A stretch of DNA of 64,000 nt from sequence record OQ427096.1; one strand, given 5' to 3'. Positions 4,259 to 49,076 of this stretch are shown here, one piece after another (position 1 is the stretch's first letter; each line of letters begins with the position of its first letter). The notes under the pieces were generated by a model, which saw nothing but the letters and a program-made list of their open reading frames with translations, had not been told where the DNA came from and made no database searches. Position numbers and translations under genes: made by a program.

Positions 4259-4651
4259 ATGTCCAACTTTCAGCAATTCCTACAAGAAGCATCCCTCAAA
4301 GAGTGCGACGAGCTCAATGAAAGCCTAATCCGTTCCGCAGGTGCGTCTTTATACGGCAAGGCTAAGACTACTCCTGATCACGTCGCATCCCAGGAAAAGG
4401 GACATGTGAACATTCACACCTATAAGACCATCCGTCGATCGGGTAGTGATAAGGAAAAGACCTATCACGTCGTGAGTCATGGCCCTTACCGTAACAGTGG
4501 TACCCATAAGATCGGTTCTCAGCATACCCATGGGTCTGGCGGACAGGCATCTAAGTTGGTCGGCGTCTCCGAATACAAGAACGGAAAGAAGACGAAGACT
4601 CACGGTGAAGACCACTCTGCCAACTCCCACTCCATTCACGTGTTCAAGTAA
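4259..4651 (+). CDS. Small basic His-rich protein with capsid-targeting-like N-terminus (putative internal head protein)
   Basis: Starts MSNFQQFLQEA at 4259 (track ORF 4115 is probably over-extended). TAAATA at 4228-4233 upstream. 12 His in 130 aa. Confidence 0.6.
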   Translation: MSNFQQFLQEASLKECDELNESLIRSAGASLYGKAKTTPDHVASQEKGHVNIHTYKTIRRSGSDKEKTYHVVSHGPYRNSGTHKIGSQHTHGSGGQASKLVGVSEYKNGKKTKTHGEDHSANSHSIHVFK

Positions 4652-4691
4652 GTCGTAAATAGAATAGAGACAACCCAAGGAACTTTTCATA

Positions 4692-5123
4692 ATGCCAAGC
4701 TCGACCTCTACAAATTACCAGTTCAACAAGTTCATGGAATACTTCCTGAAGGGAACTGCGTACACTCCGCCTACTTCGGTTTGGCTTGCCCTGTTCACGA
4801 CTGTGCCTAGCCTTGCTGGTACGGGTGGTGTCGAGGTAAGCACATCAGGTACCGCATACGGACGTAAGCAGATCCTTTCAACAGGTACTTCGTGGAACGG
4901 TCCATCCGGTACCAACCAGGAATGGTCCAATGCAGCCGACGTCACCTATAACGTGCCAACAGGAAACTGGGGTACCGTCACGGGTGCAGGACTGTACGAC
5001 GCCGAAACTGGCGGTAACCTACTCTACATCGCAACACTGGCAACTGCCAAGACGGTCAACAACGGTGACGGTGCGCCACGCGTACTCGCAGGACAGTTGA
5101 AGATCAGTCGCGCTACTTGCTGA
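4692..5123 (+). CDS. Small virion/tail structural protein
   Basis: PTSVWLALFT..P...GVEVS...Y.R...WGTVTGAGLYDAETGGNLL pattern seen in small beta-rich phage tail proteins. TAAATA at 4656 upstream. Confidence 0.6.
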   Translation: MPSSTSTNYQFNKFMEYFLKGTAYTPPTSVWLALFTTVPSLAGTGGVEVSTSGTAYGRKQILSTGTSWNGPSGTNQEWSNAADVTYNVPTGNWGTVTGAGLYDAETGGNLLYIATLATAKTVNNGDGAPRVLAGQLKISRATC

Positions 5124-5137
5124 TTGTTGGAAACACG

Positions 5138-5168
5138 AAAAAGCCCAGGCGATGAACCTGGGCTTTTT
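5138..5168. terminator. Bidirectional rho-independent terminator
   Basis: AAAAA-GCCCAGG-cgatgaa-CCTGGGC-TTTTT at the convergence of the + structural genes and the - strand island. Confidence 0.85.
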
Positions 5169-5182
5169 CACGGCAAGTGATC

Positions 5183-5608
5183 TTAGGTCGTTGCGATCAG
5201 CCTGACAAACTCTTCGGGACTGAGCATGTTTTCCTTGACACCGTAGTACGCCGTATGACCGACCACGCCATCCAGGAAACAGATCTGGGTGTAATGCGCC
5301 CACTGGGTCGATTTGTTGCCTTTGACGAGACGGTGGTTGCCGTCGTCATCGAACTCGTGGCGCATCTGTTCTTCTTCGAGAGCGATCCAGGTTCCTTCAT
5401 CCAGCGGACCTACGACTGCTTCGACTTCCTTCAGCCACAGTCCCCAGGCTGCTTCGTATTCGCCCTGCATTTCGGCGTTGTCCCAACTCCGCGTTTCTGC
5501 GTTGTAGTACTTGGCCTTGATGTCGTGTGCCTTCTCGTAGTTGGCAGACTTGTTCCGCAGGGCGGTGTATTCGCTGTGGTGAATGCTGTTCATGGTCTTT
5601 GTGCTCAC
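5183..5608 (-). CDS. Hypothetical protein
   Basis: 141 aa ORF in a tightly packed - strand run; start overlaps the stop of the upstream gene. Confidence 0.7.
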   Translation of the reverse strand: MSTKTMNSIHHSEYTALRNKSANYEKAHDIKAKYYNAETRSWDNAEMQGEYEAAWGLWLKEVEAVVGPLDEGTWIALEEEQMRHEFDDDGNHRLVKGNKSTQWAHYTQICFLDGVVGHTAYYGVKENMLSPEEFVRLIATT

Positions 5609-6063
5609 TTGATGATGGGTTGGGCTTGCTTCGACTGGTCGTACTCCGGATCATCCGGGAACCTGCCGAAGCGGTCGGGGATCAGCGCCTGTACGAAGCC
5701 TACCGGCATGTCACTATAGAATATACCGACAGCGGTAGCGTATTCTTCGAGCGCCTTCCCGGTGTCCGCTTCCACAACACGGATGGCGTGTTCGGTACCA
5801 TCACGGAACACCAACAGTCCCTCGTTGTCGCCCATGACGAACTTCTCCTTCTTCTGCCAGCCGCTGATCAGGTCAGTGATCAACTTCTCTGCAATCATGG
5901 GATGAATGTTCCCGACCATGATCACTTCGGGCCAGCCGCGTTCCGTCAAACCGACGGTGTACACAAACCCAGGATCCTTGTCTTCTGGATCAAACACACC
6001 GACCATGGTGTAACCGTTGAGTTCGATTTTGACGGCCAGTTCGATGGCGAGCATTTCGTTCAT
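5605..6063 (-). CDS. DUF4262-like protein
   Basis: Start MNEML at 6063 (TGATG overlap). VFDP....GFVYTVGL...GWPEVIMVG and Q.L.PDR.GRFP.DP.Y motifs recalled for DUF4262. Confidence 0.6.
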   Translation of the reverse strand: MNEMLAIELAVKIELNGYTMVGVFDPEDKDPGFVYTVGLTERGWPEVIMVGNIHPMIAEKLITDLISGWQKKEKFVMGDNEGLLVFRDGTEHAIRVVEADTGKALEEYATAVGIFYSDMPVGFVQALIPDRFGRFPDDPEYDQSKQAQPIIK

Positions 6064-6314
6064 CAGTTCTTCTCCAGTTGAGAGCTGTTCACTTCGATCA
6101 ACACGCGCGTCTTTCCCAGACGCACCGCATGCAGTACTCCGTCCTTTGTGTAGAACGGCATGACGATGGGACCCTGAGGACGCATACCGCCACCGATGGT
6201 CCACACCCATTCCTTGAAGTCCGGTTTCTCCATCCGGTCCTCAATCCACTTGCGTTGGAACTCGGTGAGATTGTAGGACTTGATGTTCTTCTCGAATCGT
6301 TCCTTAGTGATCAT
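6063..6314 (-). CDS. Hypothetical protein, paralog of 7243-7488
   Basis: 83 aa; shares YNxTxFQRxW...DFKxW...DG..AVxLGxTxVL with 7243-7488. Confidence 0.7.
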   Translation of the reverse strand: MITKERFEKNIKSYNLTEFQRKWIEDRMEKPDFKEWVWTIGGGMRPQGPIVMPFYTKDGVLHAVRLGKTRVLIEVNSSQLEKN

Positions 6315-6317
6315 GGC

Positions 6318-6713
6318 TCAGCATTCCTCGAGCTTGATCTTGGAACCCATAAACTCTTCCCACGCCGGAATGTCCTTCTTCTTTCCGTAGAACGCGAGAC
6401 TGACATACAGCCGTCCCTGCATGCCCTGTTCCGTGTAGGTGACCTTGTTGGCCAGCTTCTTCGGAAGACCCAGGTCGATCAGTCCCTGACGGAACTCGCG
6501 CAGGAACTTCTCGTCGGTGTAGATGAAGCCGTCGTTGCGAACCTGCCACGTCTTGGCATCGAAACGCGCGTCGATGTAGAGCGTCGCGTCATCCTCACCA
6601 TCGTAGCAGTATGCCTGGGCGATCTTGATCGCATTGATCAGGACTTCCTTCTTTGCGGTTGACCAATGACCGCGACCACTGGTGTTTGCGAACAGTTCAA
6701 CCTTCATGAGCAT
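6318..6713 (-). CDS. Hypothetical phage protein
   Basis: 131 aa ORF packed between neighbours; G.G.WS and YTEQGMQG..YVS motifs. Confidence 0.7.
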   Translation of the reverse strand: MLMKVELFANTSGRGHWSTAKKEVLINAIKIAQAYCYDGEDDATLYIDARFDAKTWQVRNDGFIYTDEKFLREFRQGLIDLGLPKKLANKVTYTEQGMQGRLYVSLAFYGKKKDIPAWEEFMGSKIKLEEC

Positions 6714-6717
6714 GTCC

Positions 6718-7104
6718 TCAGATGTTTTCGATCATGTGAGCGCGATAGCAGCGTGCCTTACTGCAATGCGGCTGGCGGAACATCAACTTGTTCTTGTGGG
6801 TCTTAGAACAGTAGGGGCAAGTGTCGGTGAGTTCAACTGCCCAGACCGCTTTGTAGGTCGCCGTTTGTTCCACCGAAGCCTTCTGACGGTCGACAAAGAA
6901 CGCACCGAAAGCGCACACTCCCTGTTTCACCTGATAGGAGCGACCCTGTGCACCGACTGCATCACCGACTTCGCCTTTCAGGAACTTCTCGAAGTCTGCC
7001 TGGGTGTATTCGGCGATCTTCGGATACTGCTCCTTCATCATCTTCTGGACTTCGGTGTCTTTGAAGATCTTGTTGAGCTGCTTTGCGAGTTCGGTGGTCT
7101 TCAT
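6718..7104 (-). CDS. Hypothetical protein with C-terminal Cys cluster (possible Zn binding)
   Basis: Likely start MKTTEL at 7104, downstream of the promoter at 7137-7166. Contains CPYC...HCSKARC. Confidence 0.65.
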   Translation of the reverse strand: MKTTELAKQLNKIFKDTEVQKMMKEQYPKIAEYTQADFEKFLKGEVGDAVGAQGRSYQVKQGVCAFGAFFVDRQKASVEQTATYKAVWAVELTDTCPYCSKTHKNKLMFRQPHCSKARCYRAHMIENI

Positions 7105-7136
7105 TTCTGGTTGCCCTACTGTTTGTCCGTGCCACA

Positions 7137-7166
7137 ATTATATAGAACTTTCGTGTCCTGGGACAA
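7137..7166 (-). promoter_or_regulatory. Sigma70-like early promoter
   Basis: Minus strand TTGTCC-N18-TATAAT. Confidence 0.65.
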
Positions 7167-7210
7167 TCTTATAGATCAGACACTTACGTATCTGTGTGAA
7201 TTTTAGCCGT

Positions 7211-7240
7211 GAAAGAGCCCGGATTTCTCCGGGCCCCTTG
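7211..7240 (-). terminator. Rho-independent terminator
   Basis: Minus strand GCCCGGA-gaaa-TCCGGGC followed by TCTTTC, just after the stop of 7243-7488. Confidence 0.65.
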
Positions 7241-7242
7241 TA

Positions 7243-7488
7243 TTACTTGGTCTCTGCCAGGACTTCGGTACGTCCCAGATGCACAGCCCGCAGCCCGTCC
7301 TCGGTCATGTAGGCCAGGACCAGCTTGCCCTCGACACGCTTGGGCTTGGAGCGGGTATGGAGCCAGTACTTGAAGTCTGCCTCTTCCTGCTTCCGCTCCA
7401 TCCATTCACGCTGGAAGGGAGTCGGGTTGTAGAGCGCCAGCTTGTCGCTGGAGTCGGACACGGTCTGGGTTTCCATTTCGTCACACAT
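7243..7488 (-). CDS. Hypothetical protein, paralog of 6063-6314
   Basis: 81 aa with GAGGAG RBS; own promoter upstream and terminator downstream. Confidence 0.7.
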   Translation of the reverse strand: MCDEMETQTVSDSSDKLALYNPTPFQREWMERKQEEADFKYWLHTRSKPKRVEGKLVLAYMTEDGLRAVHLGRTEVLAETK

Positions 7489-7531
7489 GATCTACTCCTC
7501 TGTTATTTCAGCCTCCGATTGAGGCAATCAA

Positions 7532-7560
7532 ACTGTAACGGAGTTCTTTCTGCAGGACAA
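7532..7560 (-). promoter_or_regulatory. Sigma70-like early promoter
   Basis: Minus strand TTGTCC-N17-TACAGT; same -35 hexamer as the 7137-7166 promoter. Confidence 0.55.
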
Positions 7561-7604
7561 CCACTTTGTGAAGGTTGCGGAGTCCGCTGATCTGTGTTTA
7601 GAAA

Positions 7605-7832
7605 TTACGACCACTCCGGTCCCGTTTCATCGACCCCAGAGCCACGGGTCCTCTCTACCAACTCCTTGACTAGCGGCTTGACGGTGTAGTAATAGAGCAT
7701 GGGTCTCTGTTCCATCTCAGCTGCATTGAGGCGCCTTTCCTCTGCGACTGCTTCTTCCTTTGTCTCGAATGGTCCCTGTACAGAGACGATGTTACAACCC
7801 ACTCGATAGTGTTCAACGATTACGTATGCCAT
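7605..7832 (-). CDS. Hypothetical protein
   Basis: Probable start MAYVIVE at 7832, just after the stop of the upstream ORF. Confidence 0.55.
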   Translation of the reverse strand: MAYVIVEHYRVGCNIVSVQGPFETKEEAVAEERRLNAAEMEQRPMLYYYTVKPLVKELVERTRGSGVDETGPEWS

Positions 7833-7836
7833 TGTC

Positions 7837-8037
7837 TTAGTCCCATAGTCCGCTGTGTGACTCATCTTTGAACCACTGCTTGGCACGTTCCTGTTCCGAC
7901 TCGGTCATGAGTGGGTATGCTGCATTAACCAACCCATGTCTCTTGCAGACAAGATTCTGTCTTGCTCGGATGCTGCTACTCCAGTCCCATAGGATGGGTC
8001 GAAGCAGTTGGTTGATGTATTCCTCTCTGTAGCTCAT
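7837..8037 (-). CDS. Hypothetical protein
   Basis: Start MSYREE overlaps the ATP-grasp stop (ATGA). Confidence 0.55.
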   Translation of the reverse strand: MSYREEYINQLLRPILWDWSSSIRARQNLVCKRHGLVNAAYPLMTESEQERAKQWFKDESHSGLWD

Positions 8038-8840
8038 AGCTTCTCTGCCCATTCGGTCATTGCGGTTACGATCTTATCAATGCGGTGGTCGTAGAAACCT
8101 GCGCAGTTGAAAGTGTTGAATTCGATCACCTTCATTCCATCCTCTGTATCGGCGACGTCCATAACACAGCAAGGATGAGGCAACCACTTGTCTGCGAGTG
8201 CCTGAGCGTGTTTGTAGGCTTCGGGATCGTTCAAGTGCTCAGACATGAGCCGTCCGCCGAAACGATACAGTGAGCCATCGATCACCTTTCCGTCGACAAT
8301 GAACCATCGCGACTCGCAGTAGATGTGCTTTACTGCGGCTACGATGACCTGTGTGTCTTCGCCAAACTCAAACGAACCAGAACGAGGACTCTGCATCCAG
8401 TCTCGGATGTCTGCCGTATCTGCGACAGTACCGTTGAAGGCTTTGAGATCCTTGACCGGACGAATGAACCACTTCTTGTCGTCGGCGCAGTCTCGGAAAT
8501 AGCGATTCAGCTCTTTGATTGTCAGGTGAATGCAATCGCCATTGAGCATATCGTCACGTTCCGCATTCCATCGGATAGCGTCGAAACGTTCGTTGTCGTA
8601 GCAGTTGCCTTTCCATTTCCGCTCGTTGGCCATCTTCGCCAACTTGACTGAGCCGTAGGGAATGATCACTGTGTCGTCCGGGATGTTCTCATACTCTGAT
8701 TCGTTGCCGAACTCTAGAGAAAACGGAATGACCGATGCTTCGACGGTCTGACAACCCAATGCCTTTGCCGCATTCCATACAGCCTCAGCCGTGTGATCTG
8801 CTACTAGGTTTGTCTGTACTGCCCATGTGACTTTGTTCAT
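8034..8840 (-). CDS. ATP-grasp domain protein (DUF4343/R2K-like)
   Basis: Start MNKVTW at 8840 with AAGGAG RBS. Motifs IIPYGS, WFIRPVKDLKAFNG, ESRWFIVDGKV, VMDVA......KVIEFNTFNCAGFY. Confidence 0.75.
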   Translation of the reverse strand: MNKVTWAVQTNLVADHTAEAVWNAAKALGCQTVEASVIPFSLEFGNESEYENIPDDTVIIPYGSVKLAKMANERKWKGNCYDNERFDAIRWNAERDDMLNGDCIHLTIKELNRYFRDCADDKKWFIRPVKDLKAFNGTVADTADIRDWMQSPRSGSFEFGEDTQVIVAAVKHIYCESRWFIVDGKVIDGSLYRFGGRLMSEHLNDPEAYKHAQALADKWLPHPCCVMDVADTEDGMKVIEFNTFNCAGFYDHRIDKIVTAMTEWAEKL

Positions 8841-8908
8841 AGTTCGCTCCTTATGCCACGGCAATAGCCAGGTTTCCCTGGCTACCACCAACCCCTACTA
8901 CGAGGTTT

Positions 8909-10273
8909 TTACTTGCTGGTCAACCTGTCCAGGACCTGCTTGCCTACGTCCGACTGTGCCAGACCTTCGAGCATGCCGGCGATCTTCGTACCGCCCTTCG
9001 GACCGAACATGTCCAGGACGTTGGTCACGCCTTCGTTCGGGTTGCCTGCATTGCTGATTACCTTGATCTCAGCACCCTGCAGAGCCTTCGCACCCTCGAC
9101 GCCGATCTTCTCGCTGGCCTCGACCTGACGGAGATCAATCAGGTACTTCTGGTAACCCTGGTTCTCACCGATTTCCTTAGCCAGGGTGATCTGTGCCTGC
9201 ACCGGCGCCAGCTGCATCGCCTTCTCAGCTTCTGCCTTTGCCGTACCCTCAGCCTGGATACCTTCCGCGTTCAGCTTCTGAGCAGCCAGGTTACCTTCTG
9301 CGACCAGTGTCGTGCGCTGCTTCTGTGCTTCTGCGTTGATCACTTCCTGCTGGCGCTCACCTTCTGCCTGCACGATCGCGACGTCCTTGACCTCGTTCGC
9401 CTTGACCACAGCCACCTTACGCTGAATCTCCGAAGAACGAGTTGCCTCGACTTCCTTGACTTCCATCTGACGAACAGTCGTTTCACGCTGAGCCGTCAGC
9501 ACTTCCTGCTGCGAACTTTCCTTCGCGATACCGACCGCCTTTTCCTTCTCAGCCGTTCGCTGACCGATAGCCTGTTGGGCTTCCTGATCACGCAGCTGAA
9601 CCGTCTGGGCTGCTGCAATTTCCGCAGTCTTTGCCTGCTGGGTGTTCTCAGCAACTGCGACACGGCTGTCACGTTCAATTGCCGAAGTGCGCTTGGCCAT
9701 GATGTTGGCGATCACACTCGAACCCTTGGCATCTCGGATGTCCATCAGCTCGATGTTCTTCACCGGCTCGACACCCCAGTTTTTCAGCTGCTCGCCGACT
9801 TCCTTAGTGAACTGGTCACCGAAGGTAGCGCGGTCCACCATGATCGTGTCGATTTCATGCGAGGCCAGAATGGTTCGCACCGCACCCTGTACAACCGAAG
9901 TCAGCTGTTCCTTCAGTTCATCGAAGCTCGACACTCGCTGCGCCGCAACGTTCGAGTCTGCGATTCGGAAGAAGCTCGTCACGTCAACAACGAACGGAAC
10001 ACGTTCCTTATCGTACGCCTCGTATGCGCTCAGGCTCAGGTCGAAGACCGACACAGGCAGGATGATGCGCGTCAGACCCAGCAGAGGAATCCAGGAAGGC
10101 CAGTTGTAGTAAGTGTTGCCACCATCCTGGTCCTTACCGTACGAGGTCTGCGACTTCGAACGCTGGAGCGTGTGTACTTCATTCGCCGGAACGACGACAC
10201 GCAGGTTCAGCACCCAGAAGATAGCTGCAACTGCCACGAGTGCCGCAATGCCTGCACCAATGAGAATAAACAT
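8909..10273 (-). CDS. SPFH/Band-7 flotillin-like membrane protein
   Basis: N-terminal TM helix, RVVVP.NEVH, SPFH core (VQGAVRTILASHEID) and long Ala/Glu/Gln coiled coil with AEAEA-type flotillin repeats. Confidence 0.85.
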   Translation of the reverse strand: MFILIGAGIAALVAVAAIFWVLNLRVVVPANEVHTLQRSKSQTSYGKDQDGGNTYYNWPSWIPLLGLTRIILPVSVFDLSLSAYEAYDKERVPFVVDVTSFFRIADSNVAAQRVSSFDELKEQLTSVVQGAVRTILASHEIDTIMVDRATFGDQFTKEVGEQLKNWGVEPVKNIELMDIRDAKGSSVIANIMAKRTSAIERDSRVAVAENTQQAKTAEIAAAQTVQLRDQEAQQAIGQRTAEKEKAVGIAKESSQQEVLTAQRETTVRQMEVKEVEATRSSEIQRKVAVVKANEVKDVAIVQAEGERQQEVINAEAQKQRTTLVAEGNLAAQKLNAEGIQAEGTAKAEAEKAMQLAPVQAQITLAKEIGENQGYQKYLIDLRQVEASEKIGVEGAKALQGAEIKVISNAGNPNEGVTNVLDMFGPKGGTKIAGMLEGLAQSDVGKQVLDRLTSK

Positions 10274-10842: not shown

Positions 10843-11123
10843 TTCAGTCCTTGATAGTAGGTCTTGAGTTCTTCGAGGAACTGCTGTTTCCTCAACAGAG
10901 CCTCAGCGGTGTTGGCGATCATGCTTCCGACGAATTCCTTCGGAGGAATCACGTCGAGTTCGATATCGTAGCTGTACTCACAGTGAATCGCCCAGGTCTC
11001 CCTGCTGTGGAGAATTTCGTACCAGGCGTCTTCTTTGTCTCCATTGAAGTCACCTTCGAAATACTTCCACTGACCCCAGCCGTGTCCGCCTCTACCACTG
11101 ATCCAGTATCGGTTGAACTTCAT
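10839..11123 (-). CDS. Hypothetical protein
   Basis: 94 aa, overlapping start/stop with both neighbours. Confidence 0.65.
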   Translation of the reverse strand: MKFNRYWISGRGGHGWGQWKYFEGDFNGDKEDAWYEILHSRETWAIHCEYSYDIELDVIPPKEFVGSMIANTAEALLRKQQFLEELKTYYQGLK

Positions 11124-11946: not shown

Positions 11947-11955
11947 TGTATTTCC

Positions 11956-13565: not shown

Positions 13566-13566
13566 A

Positions 13567-13606: not shown

Positions 13607-13631
13607 TTCGTGTACCTCCAAGGACTTTGTA

Positions 13632-15470: not shown

Positions 15471-16399
15471 TGGCAGTTACCCAGTATCTCTACACCGACA
15501 CCGACGCTCCAGTTCTCTACGGGCAGCCTGGGGCTTTCATCACAGTGCTGAAAGCTGTTCTTGTGAACGGTTATGGCACCAAGCCTGGTATGGGTTGGAC
15601 GCTAGAGTACGAGTCAGGAACGATCGCAGTATTCCGTAACTCGACCGCTGCGGGCTCGACAGGCATGTACCTGCGAGTAGATGACTCTAACTGGCAGTAT
15701 GCGATTGTCAAGGCCTACAAGACAATGTCGGACATTTCGACTGGAACTGATGCTATTCCTGGCGTCCTGCCTTCTTACAGCAATTCAAATATCTTCTGGC
15801 CTAAGTCAGCAAACAATAACAACAACGCTATCATGTGGAACTTCATCGGCGACGAGAGAACGTTCTACCTGAATATTTGTCCTTGGTCAAGCCAGAACGC
15901 TAATCAGTTTGCGAACTATGCGTATATCTACGCTGCGGGCGATTACGACTCCTACGTTCCTAGCTTTGCTCACAACTATTTTGTGGCAGGAAATTACGAC
16001 GGTGGCTATTCATCGAATGGTCCTTGTATGATCGACGATCAGAGTTCCTACGTATGCTGTGCTATTGGACGTGCGCAGGACAATGTCGCTGACAAATACT
16101 CCAAGGCATGGGTAAGCTACATGGCAGGTGGTGTACCTTCCGGATCATACAATCATCAAGCGTTCTCAGTCTACACAGGACAGAGAATCTTCTATCCTGC
16201 ATATGTGATGGAAAATGCTGTCCAGACCAATATCACAGGTAAGTGGCGTGGTTTGTACGGAATGGTAGGTCGCTCAAACTTCACATGGAATGAGAACTAC
16301 GGCAAGCTCCCAAACAACCCAACCGGTCCTGATTTGATTCAGTTCACAGTTTCCAATAACAGCAGTCAGGGCGTCTACATCTTGAACGGAGGCTGGTAA
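15470..16399 (+). CDS. Virion/tail structural protein
   Basis: DAPVL.G..G....VLKAVLVNGYG.K...GWT and W..IGDERTFYL motifs, recalled from phage tail appendage proteins. Confidence 0.6.
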   Translation: MAVTQYLYTDTDAPVLYGQPGAFITVLKAVLVNGYGTKPGMGWTLEYESGTIAVFRNSTAAGSTGMYLRVDDSNWQYAIVKAYKTMSDISTGTDAIPGVLPSYSNSNIFWPKSANNNNNAIMWNFIGDERTFYLNICPWSSQNANQFANYAYIYAAGDYDSYVPSFAHNYFVAGNYDGGYSSNGPCMIDDQSSYVCCAIGRAQDNVADKYSKAWVSYMAGGVPSGSYNHQAFSVYTGQRIFYPAYVMENAVQTNITGKWRGLYGMVGRSNFTWNENYGKLPNNPTGPDLIQFTVSNNSSQGVYILNGGW

Positions 16400-17385
16400 T
16401 GACAATTTTGATTGAGCCTGCAGTATTCAAGAAGGAAGGAACATACACTTGGAGCGATAGGCGCAATCACTACCTTGTCATGGATGGCGAGTTCAAAAAG
16501 AGACCAAATGATATCGGCGGTCTCGGATACATCGCGGGTATGCTACCTGGAATCGTGACAGTAGACGGCGCGCCCGCATCTAGAACAATTGAACTTCGAT
16601 TCCGGGATGGTCGTAAGGAAATCTTTGCAAGTACGGTTTCTAATCCTGTAAACGGAACCTACCTCATTGACGACCTCAACCCAAAGCTCATTGTTGATCT
16701 CATTGCAAGAGAAAAGGAAGACGGCGTCTATAACGATATCATCGTTTCCAAGATTCGCCCATGGACAGACTATCAAATGTACATCCATGGACCTGATTTC
16801 CCTAACGTTCGAATCAAGCCAATTTTCAAGCGTGTGTTTGAGCTCACCGGCGGAGTGATGCCTTATCAACTCAGCTCAGATATCACTATTCCTGAAGGAA
16901 CAGAAGTAACGCTTGATGGAAGGTTCTTGACGGTCAATGTTACTGCACCTATGGAAACAGATCTGTATATCAAGGTTCAGGACACTTCTGGGCTTTCGGT
17001 TGAAAAGAGCATCACTGTCAGTTCCTCTAATTCGATTGTATCTAAGTTCACAGGAAATTGGATCCTCGAAAACGACCCTGTAACGGACGAACCAAGACTG
17101 AGGTCAAATCAGATTCCTCATTCTGGTTCTACCTCTTCGACTTGGGCAGCCGACAAGAATTACACACAGATGTCGTTCCGTATGTTCTCATCTTCCGAAG
17201 CAGGATACGATATTTTCTACCTATATGTCAACGATTCGGAACGTGCTCGTGTTAGCGGACCAGCTGCATCCTTCAACTACAGCACTCCTATCAATGCTGG
17301 TGATGTGATTAGAGTCACTTATGCAAAGGATGGTAGTGCAATCGGTGGCACCGATGAAGCATGGGTGTATATCGACGGCGTCTAA
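16399..17385 (+). CDS. Virion/tail structural protein (beta-sandwich, Ig-like and CUB-like segments)
   Basis: N-terminal G.VTVDGAPASR.I module; C-terminal SSEAGYD.FYLYVND...Y.KDGS...GTDEAWV. Confidence 0.6.
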   Translation: MTILIEPAVFKKEGTYTWSDRRNHYLVMDGEFKKRPNDIGGLGYIAGMLPGIVTVDGAPASRTIELRFRDGRKEIFASTVSNPVNGTYLIDDLNPKLIVDLIAREKEDGVYNDIIVSKIRPWTDYQMYIHGPDFPNVRIKPIFKRVFELTGGVMPYQLSSDITIPEGTEVTLDGRFLTVNVTAPMETDLYIKVQDTSGLSVEKSITVSSSNSIVSKFTGNWILENDPVTDEPRLRSNQIPHSGSTSSTWAADKNYTQMSFRMFSSSEAGYDIFYLYVNDSERARVSGPAASFNYSTPINAGDVIRVTYAKDGSAIGGTDEAWVYIDGV

Positions 17386-17412
17386 ATAAGACGAACTCAA
17401 GAGAAACAACAA

Positions 17413-38709: not shown

Positions 38710-38743
38710 ATATCTCGAACATTAATCATTTCGAGAACCTATC

Positions 38744-40128: not shown

Positions 40129-40131
40129 GAA

Positions 40132-40410
40132 ATGACGTTTGAAGAATTTCTAGGTGAAGCCATCAAAGGATGGAAGCACGCACATAACGACCTTGCAAAG
40201 CATCGTCGCGAACAGTCTCAGGCAGGAAATGAATGGCATACGCATGCGCTGAACAAGTCTGGTAAGGAAAGCGGTATGCACGATGCTCGTAAGTCGCACG
40301 CATCAGAAGCAGCTGCTCGTGCTCACCATGAACAGTTGAAGAAGAATAACCCGAACTCGCATATCGCGCACAACCTGTACCACAACGGTAAGCACGTCGG
40401 AACGATGTAA
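40132..40410 (+). CDS. Small His-rich protein with capsid-targeting-like N-terminus
   Basis: MTFEEFLGEA start; 13 His in 92 aa. Confidence 0.65.
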   Translation: MTFEEFLGEAIKGWKHAHNDLAKHRREQSQAGNEWHTHALNKSGKESGMHDARKSHASEAAARAHHEQLKKNNPNSHIAHNLYHNGKHVGTM

Positions 40411-41419: not shown

Positions 41420-43069
41420 ATGAAATTCGATAAGACATACCATGGTGAAATCAATCCCATGGATCAGTACAATGGATTGAACAACCTTAAGAAGGCAGGC
41501 GTCAAGATTCAGATGACTCCTGAACAGGCTGAAGAGTTCTACAAGTGCTCACAGGACTTCGAGTATTTCCTTGAGAACTACGTTGAGATTTTGAGCCTTG
41601 ACCAAGGCACTGTTCCGTTCGTTCCGTTCGGCTATCAGCGCCGTGCAATGAAGAAGATCGTAGGCAACCGATTCTCAATCCTGCGATGGCCACGACAGAT
41701 GGGTAAGACTACGACAGTAGCAGCCGTCCTGTTGTGGTACGCCATCTTCAACAAGAAGTACAATATCTACGTTCTGGCTCAGCAGCGTGGACAGGCTATG
41801 GAAATTCTTGATCGTATCAAGGAAATGTACGAGTGCCTGCCATGGTGGTTCCAGCCTGGTATTCACACGTGGAACAAGGGTTCGATCCAGCTGGGCAACA
41901 AGTCCAAGATCGTGACAGCAGCTACCGGCGGTTCAGGTGTTCGTGGTAAGTCGGTCAACCTTCTGTATCTTGACGAGTTCGCATGGGTCGATAACGATCA
42001 CGAGTTCTACACAGCAACCTACCCTGTCGTATCTTCGGGTGACACGTCCAAGATCATCATCACGTCTACGCCTAACGGTATGAACCTGTTCTACAAATTG
42101 TGGACAGAGGCTCTGCGCGGTGACAACAACTATGTCTGGGACGATGCCTTGTGGCATGAGCATCCTAAGCGAGACAAGGCTTGGTATGACGAGCAGATGG
42201 CTAACATGTCTGAGCGTCAGTTCAATCAGGAATTCATGTGCGAGTTCCAAGGTTCGTCTGATACGCTGCTCTCGCCGGCAACTCTTCAGAGACTGGTCTT
42301 CCAGAATCCGATTCGTCTGCTTGGTGATCATAAGGAATTCAAGATCTATGAGGATCCGATTCCTGGACACTTCTACGTCATCACCGTTGACGTCTCGGAA
42401 GGTGTAGGTAAGGACTACTCAGTTGTTTCGGTCATTGACGTCACCGAGGCGCCTTATAAGCAGGTTGCAATGATGCGATCAAACATCATGTCTCCATTGC
42501 TGCTGGCTGACCTTGTTGATAAGACAGGTAAGAAGTACAACGATGGCTATGTGATCGTTGAGTCGAACACCTATGGTAAGCAGGTTGTTGATGCCCTGTG
42601 GATGGACTACGAGTATGAGAACATGCTTCTCTCCCGTGGTGGCAACAACGATGCAAAGATTTCGGGTGCGCGCAATGAGCGTATCGCACCAGGCGTCAAG
42701 ACTACAAAGAAGACCAAGCAGATCGGCTGCTCAACACTGAAGGGTTTGATTGAGTCGAGTCAGCTCATCATCAACGACTACGACACTATCGAGGAACTCA
42801 ACTCGTTCTCTAAGAAGGGAACAAGCTATGAGGCTGAGAAGGGCAAGTACGATGACATTGTGATGAGCCTTGTTATCTTCGCGTGGTTCTCTGCACAGCC
42901 TTACTTCGAGGACACGTTTGATCAGAACACGAGAGATCTTGTTCGTCAAAACATCCTGCAGGACGCTGAGTATCACACTGCCTTCGGATTCATGGACGAC
43001 GGCACTGACGATGGTTTCGACTTCGGCTTTGGCAAGCAGAGTGAGGAATTGTTGGAGACTTTCCACTAA
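41420..43069 (+). CDS. gp17: Terminase large subunit gp17
   Basis: Start MKFDK at 41420. PRQMGKTT Walker A, LYLDEFA Walker B, STPNG, DVSEGVG.DYS and DD.VM motifs. Confidence 0.97.
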   Translation: MKFDKTYHGEINPMDQYNGLNNLKKAGVKIQMTPEQAEEFYKCSQDFEYFLENYVEILSLDQGTVPFVPFGYQRRAMKKIVGNRFSILRWPRQMGKTTTVAAVLLWYAIFNKKYNIYVLAQQRGQAMEILDRIKEMYECLPWWFQPGIHTWNKGSIQLGNKSKIVTAATGGSGVRGKSVNLLYLDEFAWVDNDHEFYTATYPVVSSGDTSKIIITSTPNGMNLFYKLWTEALRGDNNYVWDDALWHEHPKRDKAWYDEQMANMSERQFNQEFMCEFQGSSDTLLSPATLQRLVFQNPIRLLGDHKEFKIYEDPIPGHFYVITVDVSEGVGKDYSVVSVIDVTEAPYKQVAMMRSNIMSPLLLADLVDKTGKKYNDGYVIVESNTYGKQVVDALWMDYEYENMLLSRGGNNDAKISGARNERIAPGVKTTKKTKQIGCSTLKGLIESSQLIINDYDTIEELNSFSKKGTSYEAEKGKYDDIVMSLVIFAWFSAQPYFEDTFDQNTRDLVRQNILQDAEYHTAFGFMDDGTDDGFDFGFGKQSEELLETFH

Positions 43070-43138
43070 CCTGAGAACATAAATATCTCAGACATATTGC
43101 TTACATGAAGCACGATTTTTGATCTCAGGAGAATATAG

Positions 43139-45115
43139 ATGGCATCATCTAATCTAAGCCCTGGAGTTGGTTTCACTGAAACTGACCTCACCAACATTGT
43201 TGGTTCTTCTGGCACCTCGGGCGGTGCATTTGCGGGTGACTTTGCGTGGGGACCAGTCGAGCAGATTGCGACAGTGTCTTCGCCATTGGAACTCGAGAAG
43301 ACCTATCACAAGCCAGATGACAAGAACTACACTTCTTGGTTCTCTGCATTCAACTTCCTCGCTTATACTGGCGACCTGAAGATTGTTCGTGCGGCTGACG
43401 AAGATGCAATCAACTCTTCGGATGACGGCAACGGCTTCCTGGTAAAGAACTCGAACCACTTTGAAGTTGTCAAGACTGCTCCTACAACTGTGCAGTTCGC
43501 TGCAAAGTATCCGGGTGCACTGGGTGACTCGATCGCTGTTCACATGGCTGACGCTTCGACGTTCGCTGGTTGGCAGTATGCGTATCTCTTCGACACCGCT
43601 CCGGGCTCCTCGCAGTGGGCTGAATCCCTTGGTGCAGCGAATGACGAACTTCACATCGTGATCGTTGACAAGCAGGGTAAGTTCTCGGGCGTGGTTGGTT
43701 CGGTGCTTGAGACCTTCTCTTACCTGTCGAAGGCTTCGGATTCCAAGGATGCGAACAACGGTCCTAACTTCTACATCAACGTCCTGAACCGTACTTCTAA
43801 GTATGTCTGGGCGCTGGCTCTTCCTACTGGCGCAGATCTGTCTGCTCCTTCGACCGGTAAGGTTGCTTCGGTAACTGTCGGCGCAGGTGGTACAGGCTAC
43901 ACTGCGGCACCAACCGTAACATTCTCTCTTCCAGCAACAGGCGGCGTTCGTGCTACCGGTACTGCAACTGTGACGGCTGGCGCTGTAACTGGTGTGACCA
44001 TCACCAATGCAGGTTCCGGATACGTCACGGCTCCTACTATCACATTCGCAGGAGCGGGTACAGGTGCAACGGCAACTGCGGTTGTTGGCACTGTCACTGA
44101 CGCTGCAGAATGGGGTACTCCAGGTGTGGTTGCAGGTGAAGCACAGACCTTCAAGCGCCTTGTCGCTGTAAAGGCTGCTCCTCTGACCGGTGGTAAGGAT
44201 TCGACTGCTATCACTGCAGGTGACCTGACTCGCGCTTACGATCTGTTCTCGAACCAGGAAGAAGTCGACGTATCGTTGATCTTCACTGGCGATGCAGGTG
44301 GTGAGACTGAGCACAACGTTACTGTCCAGAGTGCAATCGACAACCTTGCTGAATCCCGTCGCGACTGCGTTGTGTTCTACTCGCCGCAGCTTTCGGACGT
44401 CCTGAACAAGACTCAGTCTGACGCAGTGAACGCTGTTGTATCGACTCGTAACCTCGTTGGACGCGCAAGCTCCTACGCTGTTATGGACTCGGGTTGGAAA
44501 CTCCAGTACGACGTTTACAACGACAAGTACCGTTGGATCCCGCTGAACGCTGACCTCGCAGGTCTCTGCGCCCAGGTTGACAGCACCAATGATCCATGGG
44601 TCAGCCCAGGTGGTTACACTCGCGGTCGCCTTAAGAACGTTGTCTCGCTGGCGTTCAACCCGAACAAGACCAGCCGTGATGCGATCTACAAGGTCGGTAT
44701 CAACCCAGTTGTCACGTTCAACACTGACGGAACTGTCCTCTACGGAGACAAGACCCTGCTCGGTAAGAACTCGGCATTTGGACAGATCGGTACCCGTCGC
44801 CTGTTCATCTCCCTGGAGAAGGATATCTCGACGGCTGCTAAGTACTACCTCTTCGAGACCAACAACGACTTCACACGAAACAACTTCGTGAACATGGTGT
44901 CGCCAAAGCTCGAACAGGTACGCGGACGTGGCGGTATCGAAGACTTCCGCGTTGTTTGCGATACGTCGAACAACACCGCCGAGGTCATCATGAACCGTCA
45001 GTTTGTTGGTTCGATCTTCATCAAGCCTGTCTACTCGATCAATTGGGTTCAGCTCAACTTCGTTGCGGTCCGTCAGGACGTCAGCTTCGACGAAGTGGTC
45101 GGTGGCACATTCTAA
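43139..45115 (+). CDS. gp18: Tail sheath protein gp18
   Basis: SPGV...E.DLT; F.WGP; KYPG.LG; DSGWK..YD.YND.YRW.P; R.N.RRLF-like GTRRLF. Confidence 0.97.
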   Translation: MASSNLSPGVGFTETDLTNIVGSSGTSGGAFAGDFAWGPVEQIATVSSPLELEKTYHKPDDKNYTSWFSAFNFLAYTGDLKIVRAADEDAINSSDDGNGFLVKNSNHFEVVKTAPTTVQFAAKYPGALGDSIAVHMADASTFAGWQYAYLFDTAPGSSQWAESLGAANDELHIVIVDKQGKFSGVVGSVLETFSYLSKASDSKDANNGPNFYINVLNRTSKYVWALALPTGADLSAPSTGKVASVTVGAGGTGYTAAPTVTFSLPATGGVRATGTATVTAGAVTGVTITNAGSGYVTAPTITFAGAGTGATATAVVGTVTDAAEWGTPGVVAGEAQTFKRLVAVKAAPLTGGKDSTAITAGDLTRAYDLFSNQEEVDVSLIFTGDAGGETEHNVTVQSAIDNLAESRRDCVVFYSPQLSDVLNKTQSDAVNAVVSTRNLVGRASSYAVMDSGWKLQYDVYNDKYRWIPLNADLAGLCAQVDSTNDPWVSPGGYTRGRLKNVVSLAFNPNKTSRDAIYKVGINPVVTFNTDGTVLYGDKTLLGKNSAFGQIGTRRLFISLEKDISTAAKYYLFETNNDFTRNNFVNMVSPKLEQVRGRGGIEDFRVVCDTSNNTAEVIMNRQFVGSIFIKPVYSINWVQLNFVAVRQDVSFDEVVGGTF

Positions 45116-45139
45116 GAACAACTACTCGTAGTATTCTTG

Positions 45140-45167
45140 AGCCCCGGGAAACCGGGGCTTTTCTTTT
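45140..45167 (+). terminator. Rho-independent terminator
   Basis: AGCCCCGG-gaaa-CCGGGGCT-TTTCTTTT after gp18. Confidence 0.85.
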
Positions 45168-45201
45168 GCCTAAATAGAACGATGACAATTGGTAACCTGG
45201 C

Positions 45202-45666
45202 ATGACATTTGAAGATTTCCTATACGAAGCGTTTGGTGTGAACGAGGTTGTGACCTATGGCACAAACCCGACAGCTGACAATGGCGCCTTCTCAAGGCAT
45301 GAAGGTTCTATTCACACCTACATCCTGTTCCGAGGCAAGAAGTTTATGATCTTGTTCCTCACACAGGACAGCTCAATCACATTCTCATTGGTCAGCGAGA
45401 AGAACCTTGATTCGACGTTGATTCCTCAAAAGGAGTCTAAGGATGGTCTCGTGTTCTACAACAAGATCTTCTCGGCTATGAACGTGGTGCTCAATGCTGC
45501 ACACGCTAAGAAGTTTCAGTTTGAAGGTGAAACCGACGAGCTTAAAGACCTCTATAGCAAGTTCGTGTCCAACCGATCATTTCTCAGAATGCTCAAGGAC
45601 AAAGGCTGGCGATACGACGGAGAGAAATACGAAGGTTTGTATCTTTTCTCGAAGGTCAGCAAATAA
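45202..45666 (+). CDS. Hypothetical protein with capsid-targeting-like N-terminus
   Basis: MTFEDFLYEA start; own TAAATA at 45171. Confidence 0.7.
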   Translation: MTFEDFLYEAFGVNEVVTYGTNPTADNGAFSRHEGSIHTYILFRGKKFMILFLTQDSSITFSLVSEKNLDSTLIPQKESKDGLVFYNKIFSAMNVVLNAAHAKKFQFEGETDELKDLYSKFVSNRSFLRMLKDKGWRYDGEKYEGLYLFSKVSK

Positions 45667-45741
45667 ATACACATGATTCTCGATTAGTATGGTTAGGTCC
45701 ATAGAGATTCATCAATTCAATCTCAATAAAGGATAACTATC

Positions 45742-46290
45742 ATGGCACAGGCAGACGTTTATTCGTTTCTTGCTAACTTCCGTGGTGGCGGTGCTCGCCC
45801 TAACCGTTACCGCGTCAACATTTCCTTCCCGCTGTCTGTAGGTCGCGCTGTTGAAGCAGCAACCAAGATCAGCTTCACCTGCCAGTCGGCTTCGATTCCT
45901 GAATCCACACTGGGTGCCATTGACGTGCCTTACATGGGTCGTCAGGTAAAGATCCCGGGTGATAAGGTTTGGGGTGATTGGACTGTTCAGATCCTCCTCG
46001 ACAACGACTTCCTCGGACGTACCGTTTTCGAGCAGTGGCAGGATCAGCTGCTTGGTTTCCGAACCAACGTTGCTCAGCCACAGATGCTGAATCCAATCTT
46101 CTCGTATGCACAGGCAGACATCATCACTCTGGACCGTGCAGACCAGGAAGTACAGCGTTACCGCGTTTACGGTATCTTCCCAACAATGGTTGGCGAAATC
46201 CAGCTCGGCTACGACCAGAACGACCAGATCGCTCTGCAGCCAGTGACGTTCGCAATCAATGGCTGGGAATCTACAGCTACCCGTTTCTAA
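45742..46290 (+). CDS. gp19: Tail tube protein gp19
   Basis: GGARPNRY.V; C.SASIP....G.I.VPYMGR.VK.PGD.....W.V; F...W. Confidence 0.95.
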   Translation: MAQADVYSFLANFRGGGARPNRYRVNISFPLSVGRAVEAATKISFTCQSASIPESTLGAIDVPYMGRQVKIPGDKVWGDWTVQILLDNDFLGRTVFEQWQDQLLGFRTNVAQPQMLNPIFSYAQADIITLDRADQEVQRYRVYGIFPTMVGEIQLGYDQNDQIALQPVTFAINGWESTATRF

Positions 46291-46307
46291 GCTATGAAAC
46301 GAAGGAC

Positions 46308-46336
46308 AGCCCAGTGAAATATCTGGGCTTTTCTTT
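46308..46336 (+). terminator. Rho-independent terminator
   Basis: AGCCCAG-N8-CTGGGCT-TTTCTTT after gp19. Confidence 0.75.
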
Positions 46337-46372
46337 GGATTAAATATCATGTGAAACCATGAAGGAACTATC

Positions 46373-48022
46373 ATGCAGATTTTTGGTTACGAATTCGGGA
46401 AGAAGAAAGAACCTACACAAGAGTTGACCACGTTCAATATCGACCGTGAGACTACCTCTGAGGTCGTCGTTCCTGAGACCTATTACAATGACCATGCGGG
46501 CGTCATGTCCGTTCCGTATGAGTTGCTCCAGACTCCGGCGGATGAAGCCGAGCTTATCCGTTCTTATCGCGATCTTGCATCCACAGCTGAGGTCGATGAA
46601 GCCCTGCAGGAAATCCGAAACGAAGTTTTCATCTTCGACGTTCCTGGTAAGAAGGCTGTTGAACTAGATTTTGTCACAGAGTCTAAGCTATCAGCTGCGA
46701 TGCGCAAGAAGATTGCTGCAGAGTTTGATGAAGTTTACAAGCTCACTGACTTTGATATCAACGGCGCACAGTGGTTCGACGATTGGTATGTAGACTCCAA
46801 GATCTACCTCTACAAGATGGTAGATTACACCAAGCTCAAACAGGGTATCCAGAAGGTTCAGTTCATTGACCCACTCAAGATTCGTCTTGTCCGTGTCATG
46901 CCCAAGCCTAATCCGGATGGAACCTTCGATGCTGCTAAGGTCAAGCAGTTCTATCTGTATAGCAACTTTGATCCTAAGTCTCATCCGCTCAATCAGGTTA
47001 TTCAGCTCCAGCAGGGTACATCAATCCAAGGCATTCAAATTCGTCCAGAGAGCATCACCTATGTGAACTCTGGTCTGTTTGATCGCAACCTTGGTCGCTT
47101 TGTCGGTTATCTGAAGAAGTCGATTGTACCATTCAACATGCTTAAGATGATGGAAGATGCAATGATCATCTTCCGTGTCGTTCGTGCACCTGCACGTCGC
47201 GCCTTCTATGTTGACGTGTCTGGTCTGCAGAAGAACAAGGCTGAGGCTTACATCAAAGACCTCATGGCCAAGTTCAAGAACAAGATGGTCTATGACTCGA
47301 AGACAGGGCAGCTGTCTGATCGTCGTAACATCATGACCATGTTGGAAGACTACTGGCTGCCTCGTCGTGAAGGCAAGTCCACTGAGGTTACGACCATTGA
47401 AGGTCAGAACTCTCAGGACATCATGGATGAAATCGAATACCTACGCGACAAGTTCTGGCGTTCGCTAGGCGTACCTCGCAGCCGCTTCGGTGACCAGCAG
47501 ACTCCAAACCTGTTTGGTAAGGGTAACGAGATCACTCGTGACGAATATCGCTTCACAAAGTTCCTGCACACTCTGCGCTCGCGATTCATTCCTGTTCTGG
47601 AAGACATCCTACGCACTAACCTGCTGCTCAAGAAGATCATTACTGAGGCAGACTGGAACGATATCAAGCGCGATATCATCTGGAACTACACTGAGGACAA
47701 CACCTTCGTTGAATCGAAGGAAACGGAAATCCTCAACAACCGTCTCAATACTTTAAATACAATCGATCCTCATGTAGGCAAGTATTTCTCCAAGCTGTAT
47801 GTTCAGAAGAACGTTCTTCGCATGTCCGAGAAGGAGATCGCAGAAGAAGATAAGCAGCTTGCAAAGGAACACGCATCAGGCATCCACGATGACCCAGATG
47901 CAGAAGACGGCGACAATGGCGCGACTTTCAGCGGTAACGCTCCGCCTCAAGGTCAGGATGACGGAGAGGAACAAGAGTTTGCAGACATCCAGCCGGGCGA
48001 CAACCCATTTCCAACAGATTAA
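46373..48022 (+). CDS. gp20: Portal protein gp20
   Basis: L.MMEDA..I.RV.RAP.RR.FYVDV..L.K.KAE.Y; M.MLEDYWLPRREGK.TEVTT. Confidence 0.97.
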   Translation: MQIFGYEFGKKKEPTQELTTFNIDRETTSEVVVPETYYNDHAGVMSVPYELLQTPADEAELIRSYRDLASTAEVDEALQEIRNEVFIFDVPGKKAVELDFVTESKLSAAMRKKIAAEFDEVYKLTDFDINGAQWFDDWYVDSKIYLYKMVDYTKLKQGIQKVQFIDPLKIRLVRVMPKPNPDGTFDAAKVKQFYLYSNFDPKSHPLNQVIQLQQGTSIQGIQIRPESITYVNSGLFDRNLGRFVGYLKKSIVPFNMLKMMEDAMIIFRVVRAPARRAFYVDVSGLQKNKAEAYIKDLMAKFKNKMVYDSKTGQLSDRRNIMTMLEDYWLPRREGKSTEVTTIEGQNSQDIMDEIEYLRDKFWRSLGVPRSRFGDQQTPNLFGKGNEITRDEYRFTKFLHTLRSRFIPVLEDILRTNLLLKKIITEADWNDIKRDIIWNYTEDNTFVESKETEILNNRLNTLNTIDPHVGKYFSKLYVQKNVLRMSEKEIAEEDKQLAKEHASGIHDDPDAEDGDNGATFSGNAPPQGQDDGEEQEFADIQPGDNPFPTD

Positions 48023-48034
48023 AGGAGCCGATTA

Positions 48035-48829
48035 ATGGCAATTGATATCAACAAATTGAACGCCTACGACTTCATCAAGGAAATGAAAAGCCATATGGCT
48101 AACGTCCTTGAGGAGCGTCTAGAGAGTGGTGAGGTCTGCCCTCCGCTGCCTCTGGAAGAGCACGTAGCTAAGGATACAACCGACACCGATTGGACTGCAA
48201 TGGGTGAGGCTGAAAAGAACCTAGTCATCTCGCTCCGTGAGAACGGTCGCCAGCGTGGTTCAGACGAAGGTGCTTATGCATCTGGTGTCCTTTGGCTGAC
48301 ATTCAAGAACAAGAAGGCTTGCGAAGACTACTGCACCTACCTCGAAACTGCAGATGGCGTTGACACCTATGAGATTGAAGCTGTACGCGAAGATCTCGTG
48401 AACGGTTTTGTCGAAGATCAGGAATATGACTTCGGTGACATTATGTTCGACAAGGACTTTGAATTCAACGTCTATGTCTACATTGATGCAGACCTAGTTA
48501 TGCTTCCGGCTGAAGATCTCGAAGTTGGCGACGAGTTTGAATGGGATGACGATTCAGACAACGGTTTCCTGTCCGAGGTTCGCCGAAAGATCAAGGTAAA
48601 CTTCCGCGGTAAGAAGCGCATTAAGATGCAGTGCAGCCCTGGATTCAAGTGGGATGCGGCAGCTAAGACCTGTAAGAAGATCTCTGGTGCTCAGGTAGCT
48701 GTTATGCGAAAGGCAATGCGCCGCGCGGTATTGACCAAGAAGTCGATGGGCCAGTCGTTCAAGGCACGAGTCGTTCGCAAGACCCGCAAGGCTAACCGCT
48801 TCCGTAAATCATTTGGACTGGGACGCTGA
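48035..48829 (+). CDS. Prohead core protein (gp68-like C-terminus, extended acidic N-terminus)
   Basis: Located between portal and protease. Basic C-terminus LSEVRRKIKVNFRGK.RIKM.C.PGFK...RKA.R.RKS.GL. Confidence 0.65.
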   Translation: MAIDINKLNAYDFIKEMKSHMANVLEERLESGEVCPPLPLEEHVAKDTTDTDWTAMGEAEKNLVISLRENGRQRGSDEGAYASGVLWLTFKNKKACEDYCTYLETADGVDTYEIEAVREDLVNGFVEDQEYDFGDIMFDKDFEFNVYVYIDADLVMLPAEDLEVGDEFEWDDDSDNGFLSEVRRKIKVNFRGKKRIKMQCSPGFKWDAAAKTCKKISGAQVAVMRKAMRRAVLTKKSMGQSFKARVVRKTRKANRFRKSFGLGR

Positions 48830-48830
48830 G

Positions 48831-49076
48831 ATGACGTTTGACGAATACCTAGCAGAGCAAAACTTGGCTGCGATGGCTAATCATCACTTCACTAAGGCTA
48901 AGCGCCACAAAGAAGGCACGCTGCATTGGCATAAGCACAATGCGCGTGGCCACGCACTTTGCTCACAACATCACGATAAGAACGGCGACCACAAAAAGGC
49001 TGCCGAGCATCACGCCAAGTGCGAAGAGCACATTGCCGCTGCCGAAAAGATCGAAGATCAGAAGCACGGCTATTAA
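48831..49076 (+). CDS. Small His-rich protein with capsid-targeting-like N-terminus
   Basis: MTFDEYLAEQ start at 48831; 14 His in 81 aa. Confidence 0.6.
   Translation: MTFDEYLAEQNLAAMANHHFTKAKRHKEGTLHWHKHNARGHALCSQHHDKNGDHKKAAEHHAKCEEHIAAAEKIEDQKHGY

Follow-up and report, generated by a model that had tools for sequence, protein, structure and literature searches.

We analysed a window of 64,000 nucleotides (nt), bases 1-64000 of the Xanthomonas phage X1 record (OQ427096.1, 200,058 bp) and identical to it in sequence, and in it four small genes, designated here A, B, C and D, whose products begin with nearly the same nine or ten residues (the tag). X1 is a T4-like myovirus with a genome of 200 kb that infects X. 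campestris pv. campestris 8004; its kinship to T4 is distant and its host, Xanthomonas, is a different one. The window holds a T4-like late block with baseplate genes, gp13, gp14, gp15 and terminase genes, together with the sheath gp18, tube gp19, portal gp20, a gp68-like gene, gp21, gp22 and gp23. An earlier reading of the window, made from its letters only (the original prediction), had pointed at four open reading frames (ORFs) with near-identical N-termini dispersed among late structural genes. All four were recovered with the coordinates and starts that it gave, and their position in the late block was borne out by the annotation and family matches of their neighbours. In the X1 record all four are annotated as hypothetical proteins. 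In the list below, aa stands for amino acids and a slash marks the predicted cut.

4259..4651, plus strand: gene A, 130 aa; tag in codons 1-10 (4259-4288), MSNFQQFLQE/AS; mature part basic, His/Lys-rich
40132..40410, plus strand: gene B, 92 aa; tag in codons 1-9 (40132-40158), MTFEEFLGE/AI; 14% His
45202..45666, plus strand: gene C, 154 aa; tag in codons 1-9 (45202-45228), MTFEDFLYE/AF; then a globular alpha/beta domain
48831..49076, plus strand: gene D, 81 aa; tag in codons 1-9 (48831-48857), MTFDEYLAE/QN; 17% His

Comparisons were made with T4, the genes of which were read from NC_000866, and with phage BUDD (ON758385.1), the sole close cultured relative of X1 (DNA identity about 89%); the X1 and BUDD genomes were compared in full.

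Tag motif and its frequency in the X1 genome

The starts of the four genes follow the pattern M-x(1,2)-F-[EQD]-[EQD]-[FY]-L-x-E. In T4, ipII and ipIII begin with MKTYQEFIAE followed by Ala, as the original prediction had stated, and ipI begins with MKTFKEF. Work of the Black laboratory, as reviewed, established that the first ten residues of the internal protein (IP) IPIII suffice for incorporation into the head, and that targeting by the T4 tag involves residues 4 and 7, and its processing residues 8 and 10 (PMC9026906). The invariant tag positions in X1 and BUDD are an aromatic residue at 4, an aromatic residue at 7, Leu or Ile at 8 and Glu at 10, i.e. those critical in T4, which supports a targeting sequence of the T4 type. 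The exact T4 register is kept in gene A and in an extra tagged gene of BUDD (at 164593); the remaining tags are one residue shorter. Set against a propeptide of about 10-19 residues with the pattern of a capsid targeting sequence, the start of A agrees position for position and those of B, C and D agree with a shift of one residue.

The four genes were described in the original prediction as unrelated, and this was upheld: in pairwise comparisons against shuffled controls the mature parts were alike in composition at most (z <= 2.1). An unusual His/Lys-rich composition is common to A, B and D.

The core F[EQD][EQD][FY]L.E occurs five times in the six-frame translation of the 200-kb X1 genome, and four of these occurrences are the N-termini of A-D. 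Since a motif should not be judged by the data that suggested it, a second one was fixed from the T4 literature alone, M.{1,2}[FYW]..[FYW][LI].E, with aromatic residues at 4 and 7, Leu or Ile at 8, Glu at 10 and one residue fewer allowed. It was matched six times in X1 against 0.39 expected from residue frequencies (mean 0.27 and maximum 3 in 100 shuffled genomes) and eight times in BUDD, which makes it over-represented 15-20-fold; nearly all matches in both genomes lie at gene starts. The enrichment at ORF starts on which the original prediction depended was also present, with 5 of 312 predicted N-termini matching as compared with 1 of 1247 internal Met residues (Fisher p = 0.0016).

While all four members of the proposed set hold, the set itself proved larger. 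Two more genes of X1, both outside the window, match the motif and probably belong to the same class:

X1 genome 122029-122556: extra tagged gene, 175 aa, MSFETYLKE/S; basic, His-rich; conserved
X1 genome 84124-84540: extra tagged gene, 138 aa, MIDFDTWLYE/D; ParB-like domain; conserved

The membership of a further gene, 83009-83239 (X1 genome), is uncertain; its acidic product carries the core motif at residues 11-17, and a conserved copy is present in BUDD.

A peculiarity of codon usage was seen in the tags. Their Leu is encoded by CTA in all four genes (4280-4282, 40150-40152, 45220-45222 and 48849-48851), a codon that accounts for 7% of the Leu codons of large X1 genes and, outside the tags, for 1 of 25 in A-D; X1 carries a tRNA-Leu(UAG). 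The CTA is mostly retained in the BUDD copies and not in more distant relatives, and the idea that it marks a cassette at the DNA level was rejected, as it is not upheld there.

Late-expression context, protease sites and mature proteins

Upstream of A and C the following elements were identified:

4226..4233, plus strand: late-promoter-like box GATAAATA, 33 nt before gene A; the same spacing is seen at gp13, gp14, gp20 and gene C
45169..45176, plus strand: late-promoter-like box CCTAAATA, 33 nt before gene C
45139..45160, plus strand: terminator-like hairpin after gp18, upstream of gene C

TAAATA is found in X1 44 times on the gene (plus) strand and 4 times on the minus strand (23 and 0 in the window), and many late genes have it upstream, typically at a distance of 33-67 nt. 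In T4 the late promoter is a simple 8-bp TATA box (PMC2988020); given this description and the strand bias, TAAATA is likely the late-promoter core of X1, which also encodes a gp55-type sigma factor. The original prediction had placed TAAATA just upstream of three of the four genes. This was confirmed for A and C (both at -33); for B the hexamer is found only at -96, inside gp15, and D has none within 120 nt. Gene B starts 4 nt past the stop codon of gp15 and gene D 2 nt past that of the gp68-like gene, so that the sequence context is compatible with late expression of all four: A and C by their boxes, B by coupling to gp15 and D by coupling to the gp68-like gene.

The machinery on which such a tag would act is encoded directly downstream of D, in one block with the gp68-like gene:

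48035..48829, plus strand: gp68-like prohead core/scaffold-related protein, 264 aa; PHROG head scaffolding match at residues 180-262; annotated as putative prohead core protein; upstream of D
49096..49785, plus strand: gp21-type prohead protease; Pfam Peptidase_S77, 96.9 bits; match to the T4 prohead protease structure 5jbl
49851..50663, plus strand: gp22-type scaffolding core protein, 270 aa; Pfam T4_CASP
50734..51969, plus strand: gp23 major capsid protein; predicted propeptide 50734-50880, ending ALNE/AS

The gp21 protease named in the original prediction is thus present as a Peptidase_S77 gene, and is presumed to be the enzyme that removes the tags; the gp22-type scaffold is their presumed docking partner. 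The sites in gp22 and gp23 which were said to match those of the tags do so: several gp22 sites have the same E/A context, and gp23 has ALNE/AS at residue 49, with the N-terminus of mature T4 gp23 aligning within about 15 residues of it. The pattern [LI]xE recovers the accepted T4 sites (gp23 at 65, gp24 at 10, IPII and IPIII at 10, IPI at 19). Its density in X1 gp22 is 7.0 per 100 aa (19 sites in 270 aa), compared with 0.85 in 34 large X1 proteins. All four tagged genes have L-x-E at the tag boundary, with Ala next in three. In B, C, D and the two extra tagged genes of BUDD this is the single [LI]xE site, and their 457 mature residues hold none where 3.9 would be expected (P = 0.02); A has two further LxE sites, at residues 15 and 21. 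T4 IPI, IPII and IPIII likewise have exactly one [LI]xE site each, at the tag boundary.

After the predicted cut the mature A-D proteins have 72-145 aa and an isoelectric point (pI) of 9.0-10.0. Such basic bodies are as expected for proteins retained on DNA; those of B, C and D, with their one site at the tag boundary, would be resistant to gp21, and in A the two additional sites both fall in the first 21 residues. D, B, A and the 122029 product are the four most His-rich real proteins of X1 (17, 14, 9 and 9% His; genome mean 2.6%), with D at the top. For the His/Lys-rich proteins A, B and D, a role as DNA-associated counter-ions or as metal binders is possible.

None of A-D matched a Pfam, PHROGs or NCBIfam family. 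A word-indexed search of 5.8 billion proteins returned for gene A the query alone; the same was true for gene C, 27 remote homologues of which were obtained only by a full HMMER scan. With the alignment of these homologues AlphaFold modelled C with a predicted local distance difference test (pLDDT) of 88.6 and a predicted template modelling score (pTM) of 0.82, and this model, with the tag as a helix at residues 3-12 followed by the alpha/beta domain, replaced a poor single-sequence one (pLDDT 53). Against the Protein Data Bank (PDB) it gave no significant match (best E = 0.06). A GNAT-like acetyltransferase fold was considered and rejected, as the best structural matches had E = 0.06 and template modelling (TM) scores of 0.35-0.38 and a profile search of the PDB returned nothing. 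Sequence and profile searches of the PDB with the B and C families gave nothing usable. The fold of C matches uncharacterised phage proteins, some of them domains of much larger proteins; the matches in Atu_ph07 could not be mapped to the published virion proteome of that phage. No link of the cargo to any known anti-defence protein was found. C, which diverges rapidly, is the most promising candidate for a factor directed at the host, possibly against its defences.

Conservation, turnover and distribution of the tagged genes

Between X1 and BUDD the products of B and D are 96% and 88% identical. That of C is 39.6% identical, with its neighbours gp18 and gp19 at 94.5% and 98.4%. BUDD lacks gene A, which together with its promoter-like box forms a clean insertion or deletion of about 440 nt; its flanks are conserved, and it lies behind the gp5 hub gene (window 4091-4691 versus BUDD 84424-84602). 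In turn, BUDD has two extra tagged genes, one between gp21 and gp22 (MKFEDYLAE) and one at 164342-164593 beside nrdA and adjoining a tRNA gene (MSTFEEFLNEA). The latter stands directly after the tRNA gene, a placement that was likened to that of T4 ipI adjoining the T4 tRNA cluster. X1 itself has 41 tRNA genes at 123424-147337 of its genome (ARAGORN), several of which alternate with small ORFs.

An X1-like metagenome contig, L129, has tagged genes in all four of the slots that it covers (those of B, C and D and the one between gp21 and gp22 seen in BUDD); the cargo is a different one in the D slot and in the slot between gp21 and gp22 (MNFGDFLFE and MNFEDFLFE). The B family, with 9 members and identities down to 40%, retains the tag and has its Glu invariant. 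Among the 28 members of the C family (22-49% identity) the Glu is conserved in at least 90%, and many start with M-K-x-F-K-E-[FY]-L-x-E. In relatives the tag Leu has the codon CTT, CTC or TTG, or Met, Ile or Val stands in its place.

Comparable starts, on tandem small genes with a common tag and unrelated bodies, were found in other T4-like contigs. Contig L131 has three genes that start with MITFK, L132 two genes starting with MKSIYSLI.E immediately before gp21, and L134 three genes starting with M.P.FKE[YF]L beside a C-family gene; in L116 one gene (747-1061), near the terminase gene, starts with MKSFQQFLSE. The occurrence of tags in the B and C families and in these contigs indicates that the tag is old and widespread, with local variants. 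In L131 (4965-7360 and 9740-10434) the MITFK genes lie near genes for an alpha-glucosyltransferase (Pfam AGT), a DNA methylase and dCMP/thymidylate enzymes, and are thus neighbours of DNA-modification genes in a T4-like phage that has not been cultured. In L132, two adjacent genes between the portal and protease genes (15841-16257 and 16266-16535) have in common a different N-terminus of 15 residues, MDIK[DE]ILNTKRDEAL, on bodies that are not related; in that lineage it could represent a second type of address or propeptide.

A tblastn search with B and C of 50,697 phage records returned X1 and BUDD alone. The exact degenerate DNA pattern of the tag had 38 matches in IMG/VR, mostly deep inside long ORFs and uninformative.

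Some further features of X1 were recorded in passing. The genes annotated as GTP cyclohydrolase I, TGT-like transglycosylase, QueE-like gene and PTPS gene (X1 genome 69405-75509 and 172197-172703) suggest a DNA modification of the 7-deazaguanine type; a cytidyltransferase gene and the ParB-like tagged gene (84124) lie near this set. A 655-aa antisense ORF (window 43154-45121, minus strand) spans the entire sheath gene and is codon-aligned with gp18. It exists because gp18 avoids TTA, CTA and TCA beyond codon 6, and was rejected as a gene, being an artefact of codon bias.

Interpretation and alternative explanations

We consider it probable that A-D are tagged internal head proteins of the T4 type, with a mechanism as in T4; the tag, the machinery, the sites, the late context, the basic bodies and the turnover, i.e. 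every sequence-level test run, agree with the T4-like capsid targeting sequence put forward in the original prediction. We infer the docking, cleavage, retention and ejection of these proteins from the genes as follows. A-D would be synthesised late in infection. The first 9-10 residues would form an amphipathic helix with two aromatic residues three apart and then Leu, and this helix would serve as the capsid targeting sequence, keeping the protein attached to the gp22 core during prohead assembly. Cleavage by gp21 after the Glu of L-x-E would then remove the tag, and the basic mature protein (72-145 aa; in B, C and D with no further cleavage sites) would stay in the head with the DNA and most likely exit with it at infection.

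The X1 set and T4 IPI, IPII and IPIII are alike in several respects: the mature proteins are small and basic and, in X1 by sequence context, expressed late; one tag is carried on unrelated cargo bodies; the gene sets vary between close relatives; both phages encode a gp21-family protease and a gp22-family scaffold; and there is one [LI]xE site per protein (in X1, in B, C and D). The two sets differ in gene arrangement, as each X1 gene is a single insertion between core late structural genes and T4 IP genes occupy separate loci, and in composition, the T4 proteins being Lys-rich with 1-2% His and four of the X1 proteins having 9-17% His. The parallel drawn with T4 does not extend to the cargo, since no homologue of the T4 internal proteins is present in the X1 set: there was no Pfam IPI_T4 match among A-D, and hhalign of the C family against T4 IPIII gave a probability of 1.2% and thus no relation. 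What is new here is the cargo, and the system is of a known kind, that of T4-type tagged internal proteins.

Other phages load proteins into the head in related ways. In the giant phages phiKZ, 201phi2-1 and SPN3US, N-terminal propeptides address head-internal ejection proteins and a homologous protease cuts after Glu (PMC5694885); those propeptides are mostly longer than 100 residues, with the motif A/S-x-E, whereas the X1 tags have 9-10 residues and L-x-E, as in T4. T4 also packages Alt, an ADP-ribosyltransferase; this larger enzyme enters the head as cargo and undergoes trimming by gp21 (PMC9026906). X1 encodes at 95507-99694 of its genome a 1395-aa protein that begins MILQE and has a PARP-type ADP-ribosyltransferase domain; it is a possible counterpart of Alt and, unlike A-D, lacks the aromatic tag. 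A tag of the IP type outside T-even phages was not found described in the open literature, although subscription journals may hold a description.

Several observations weigh against our interpretation. There is no published virion proteome for X1 or any relative with these genes. No resemblance to a T4 internal protein or to a solved structure was seen in any mature part (Pfam, PHROGs, NCBIfam, PDB). X1 gp21 is about 36% identical to proteases of the T4 group (e.g. RB69) over about two thirds of its length, and so both the specificity of the protease and the docking site could differ from those of T4. The 84124 candidate, a ParB-like-domain protein encoded among nucleotide-modification genes, may be a chance match. 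As to distribution, no motif was detected in the first 50 kb of Stenotrophomonas phage Mendera, the nearest cultured outgroup, and marine relatives anchored on gp21 rarely carry the motif near gp21: a tag-like gene was present in 1 of 80 gp21-anchored IMG/VR loci (that of L116), the best protease identity being 48%. Finally, D occupies the position of the T4 core genes 67 and 68 and could be a core component.

This last point leads to an explanation that we regard as improbable, namely that the tagged proteins, D above all, are transient components of the prohead core like T4 gp67 and gp68, which would be cut by gp21, be expelled or degraded by the time DNA packaging is over (before or during it), and be neither retained nor injected. 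T4 gp67 and gp68 are small like D, are encoded between the portal gene and gene 21, enter the core and are cut by gp21; D lies in this very slot, between the gp68-like gene and gp21, and in both BUDD and the X1-like contig another tagged gene stands between gp21 and gp22. On the other hand, an IP-type tag is missing from gp67 and gp68, whose [LI]xE density is 3.5-3.8 per 100 aa, whereas D has the tag and a single site and gave no alignment with T4 gp67 (BLASTP). D is therefore built like an internal protein and not like a core protein, and its candidacy as a gp67/gp68 homologue was rejected. Moreover, the mature parts are basic, as DNA-retained proteins are expected to be, and A, B and C are encoded outside the core-gene block.

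It is very unlikely that the N-terminal motif serves another purpose than a capsid address, e.g. as a protein-binding epitope for the sliding clamp, or as a signal in mRNA or at the start of translation. The motif is hydrophobic and acidic like the clamp-binding epitopes of T4 gp43, gp55 and gp33; these, however, are C-terminal (PMC2988020), whereas the X1 motif is at the extreme N-terminus, in the register of the experimentally defined T4 tag and followed by the E/A context of the protease. The rare CTA in all four genes hints at a constraint on nucleotides, but the remaining tag codons vary synonymously, and in relatives the Leu codon is a different one or the residue is replaced. Hardly credible is an origin by chance, or by leftover common descent of small paralogues, with no function attached. 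It could be argued that the strict motif was defined after the genes had been inspected and that A, B and D are alike in their His/Lys-rich composition. Yet the motif fixed beforehand retains its excess and its near-confinement to gene starts in two genomes, the mature parts share composition at most, and the tag is still there in B- and C-family members of 22-40% identity, as well as in front of unrelated cargo in other T4-like contigs.

Internal head proteins of the T4 type thus remain the explanation that we favour for A-D. Proteins carried along with the phage DNA act ahead of all phage gene expression; T4 examples are IPI, which inhibits a restriction system, and IPIII, which is needed to infect particular strains. 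A broader proposition, which we advance with considerable doubt, is that the T4 head-address tag is an ancient label of the T4 superfamily, tuned in each lineage, by which packaged and probably injected protein sets could be read from the genomes of phages with a gp21-type protease. In the X1 lineage it would mark two new classes of cargo, very His-rich small basic proteins and the widespread C family, about 150 aa in length, whose fold is absent from the PDB, C being an injected counter-defence factor under arms-race selection; its 40% identity between phages otherwise 94-98% identical would be the mark of such a factor.

If the tag acts in X1 as in T4, a ten-residue pattern would flag first-response proteins that have no homology to known cargo, including those of uncultured relatives, and would do so in a phage considered for biocontrol of black rot. 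The comparisons also show how the cargo set changes, namely by single cassettes of promoter plus gene slipped between conserved structural genes, with the same tag in the same slot carrying different cargo in related phages.

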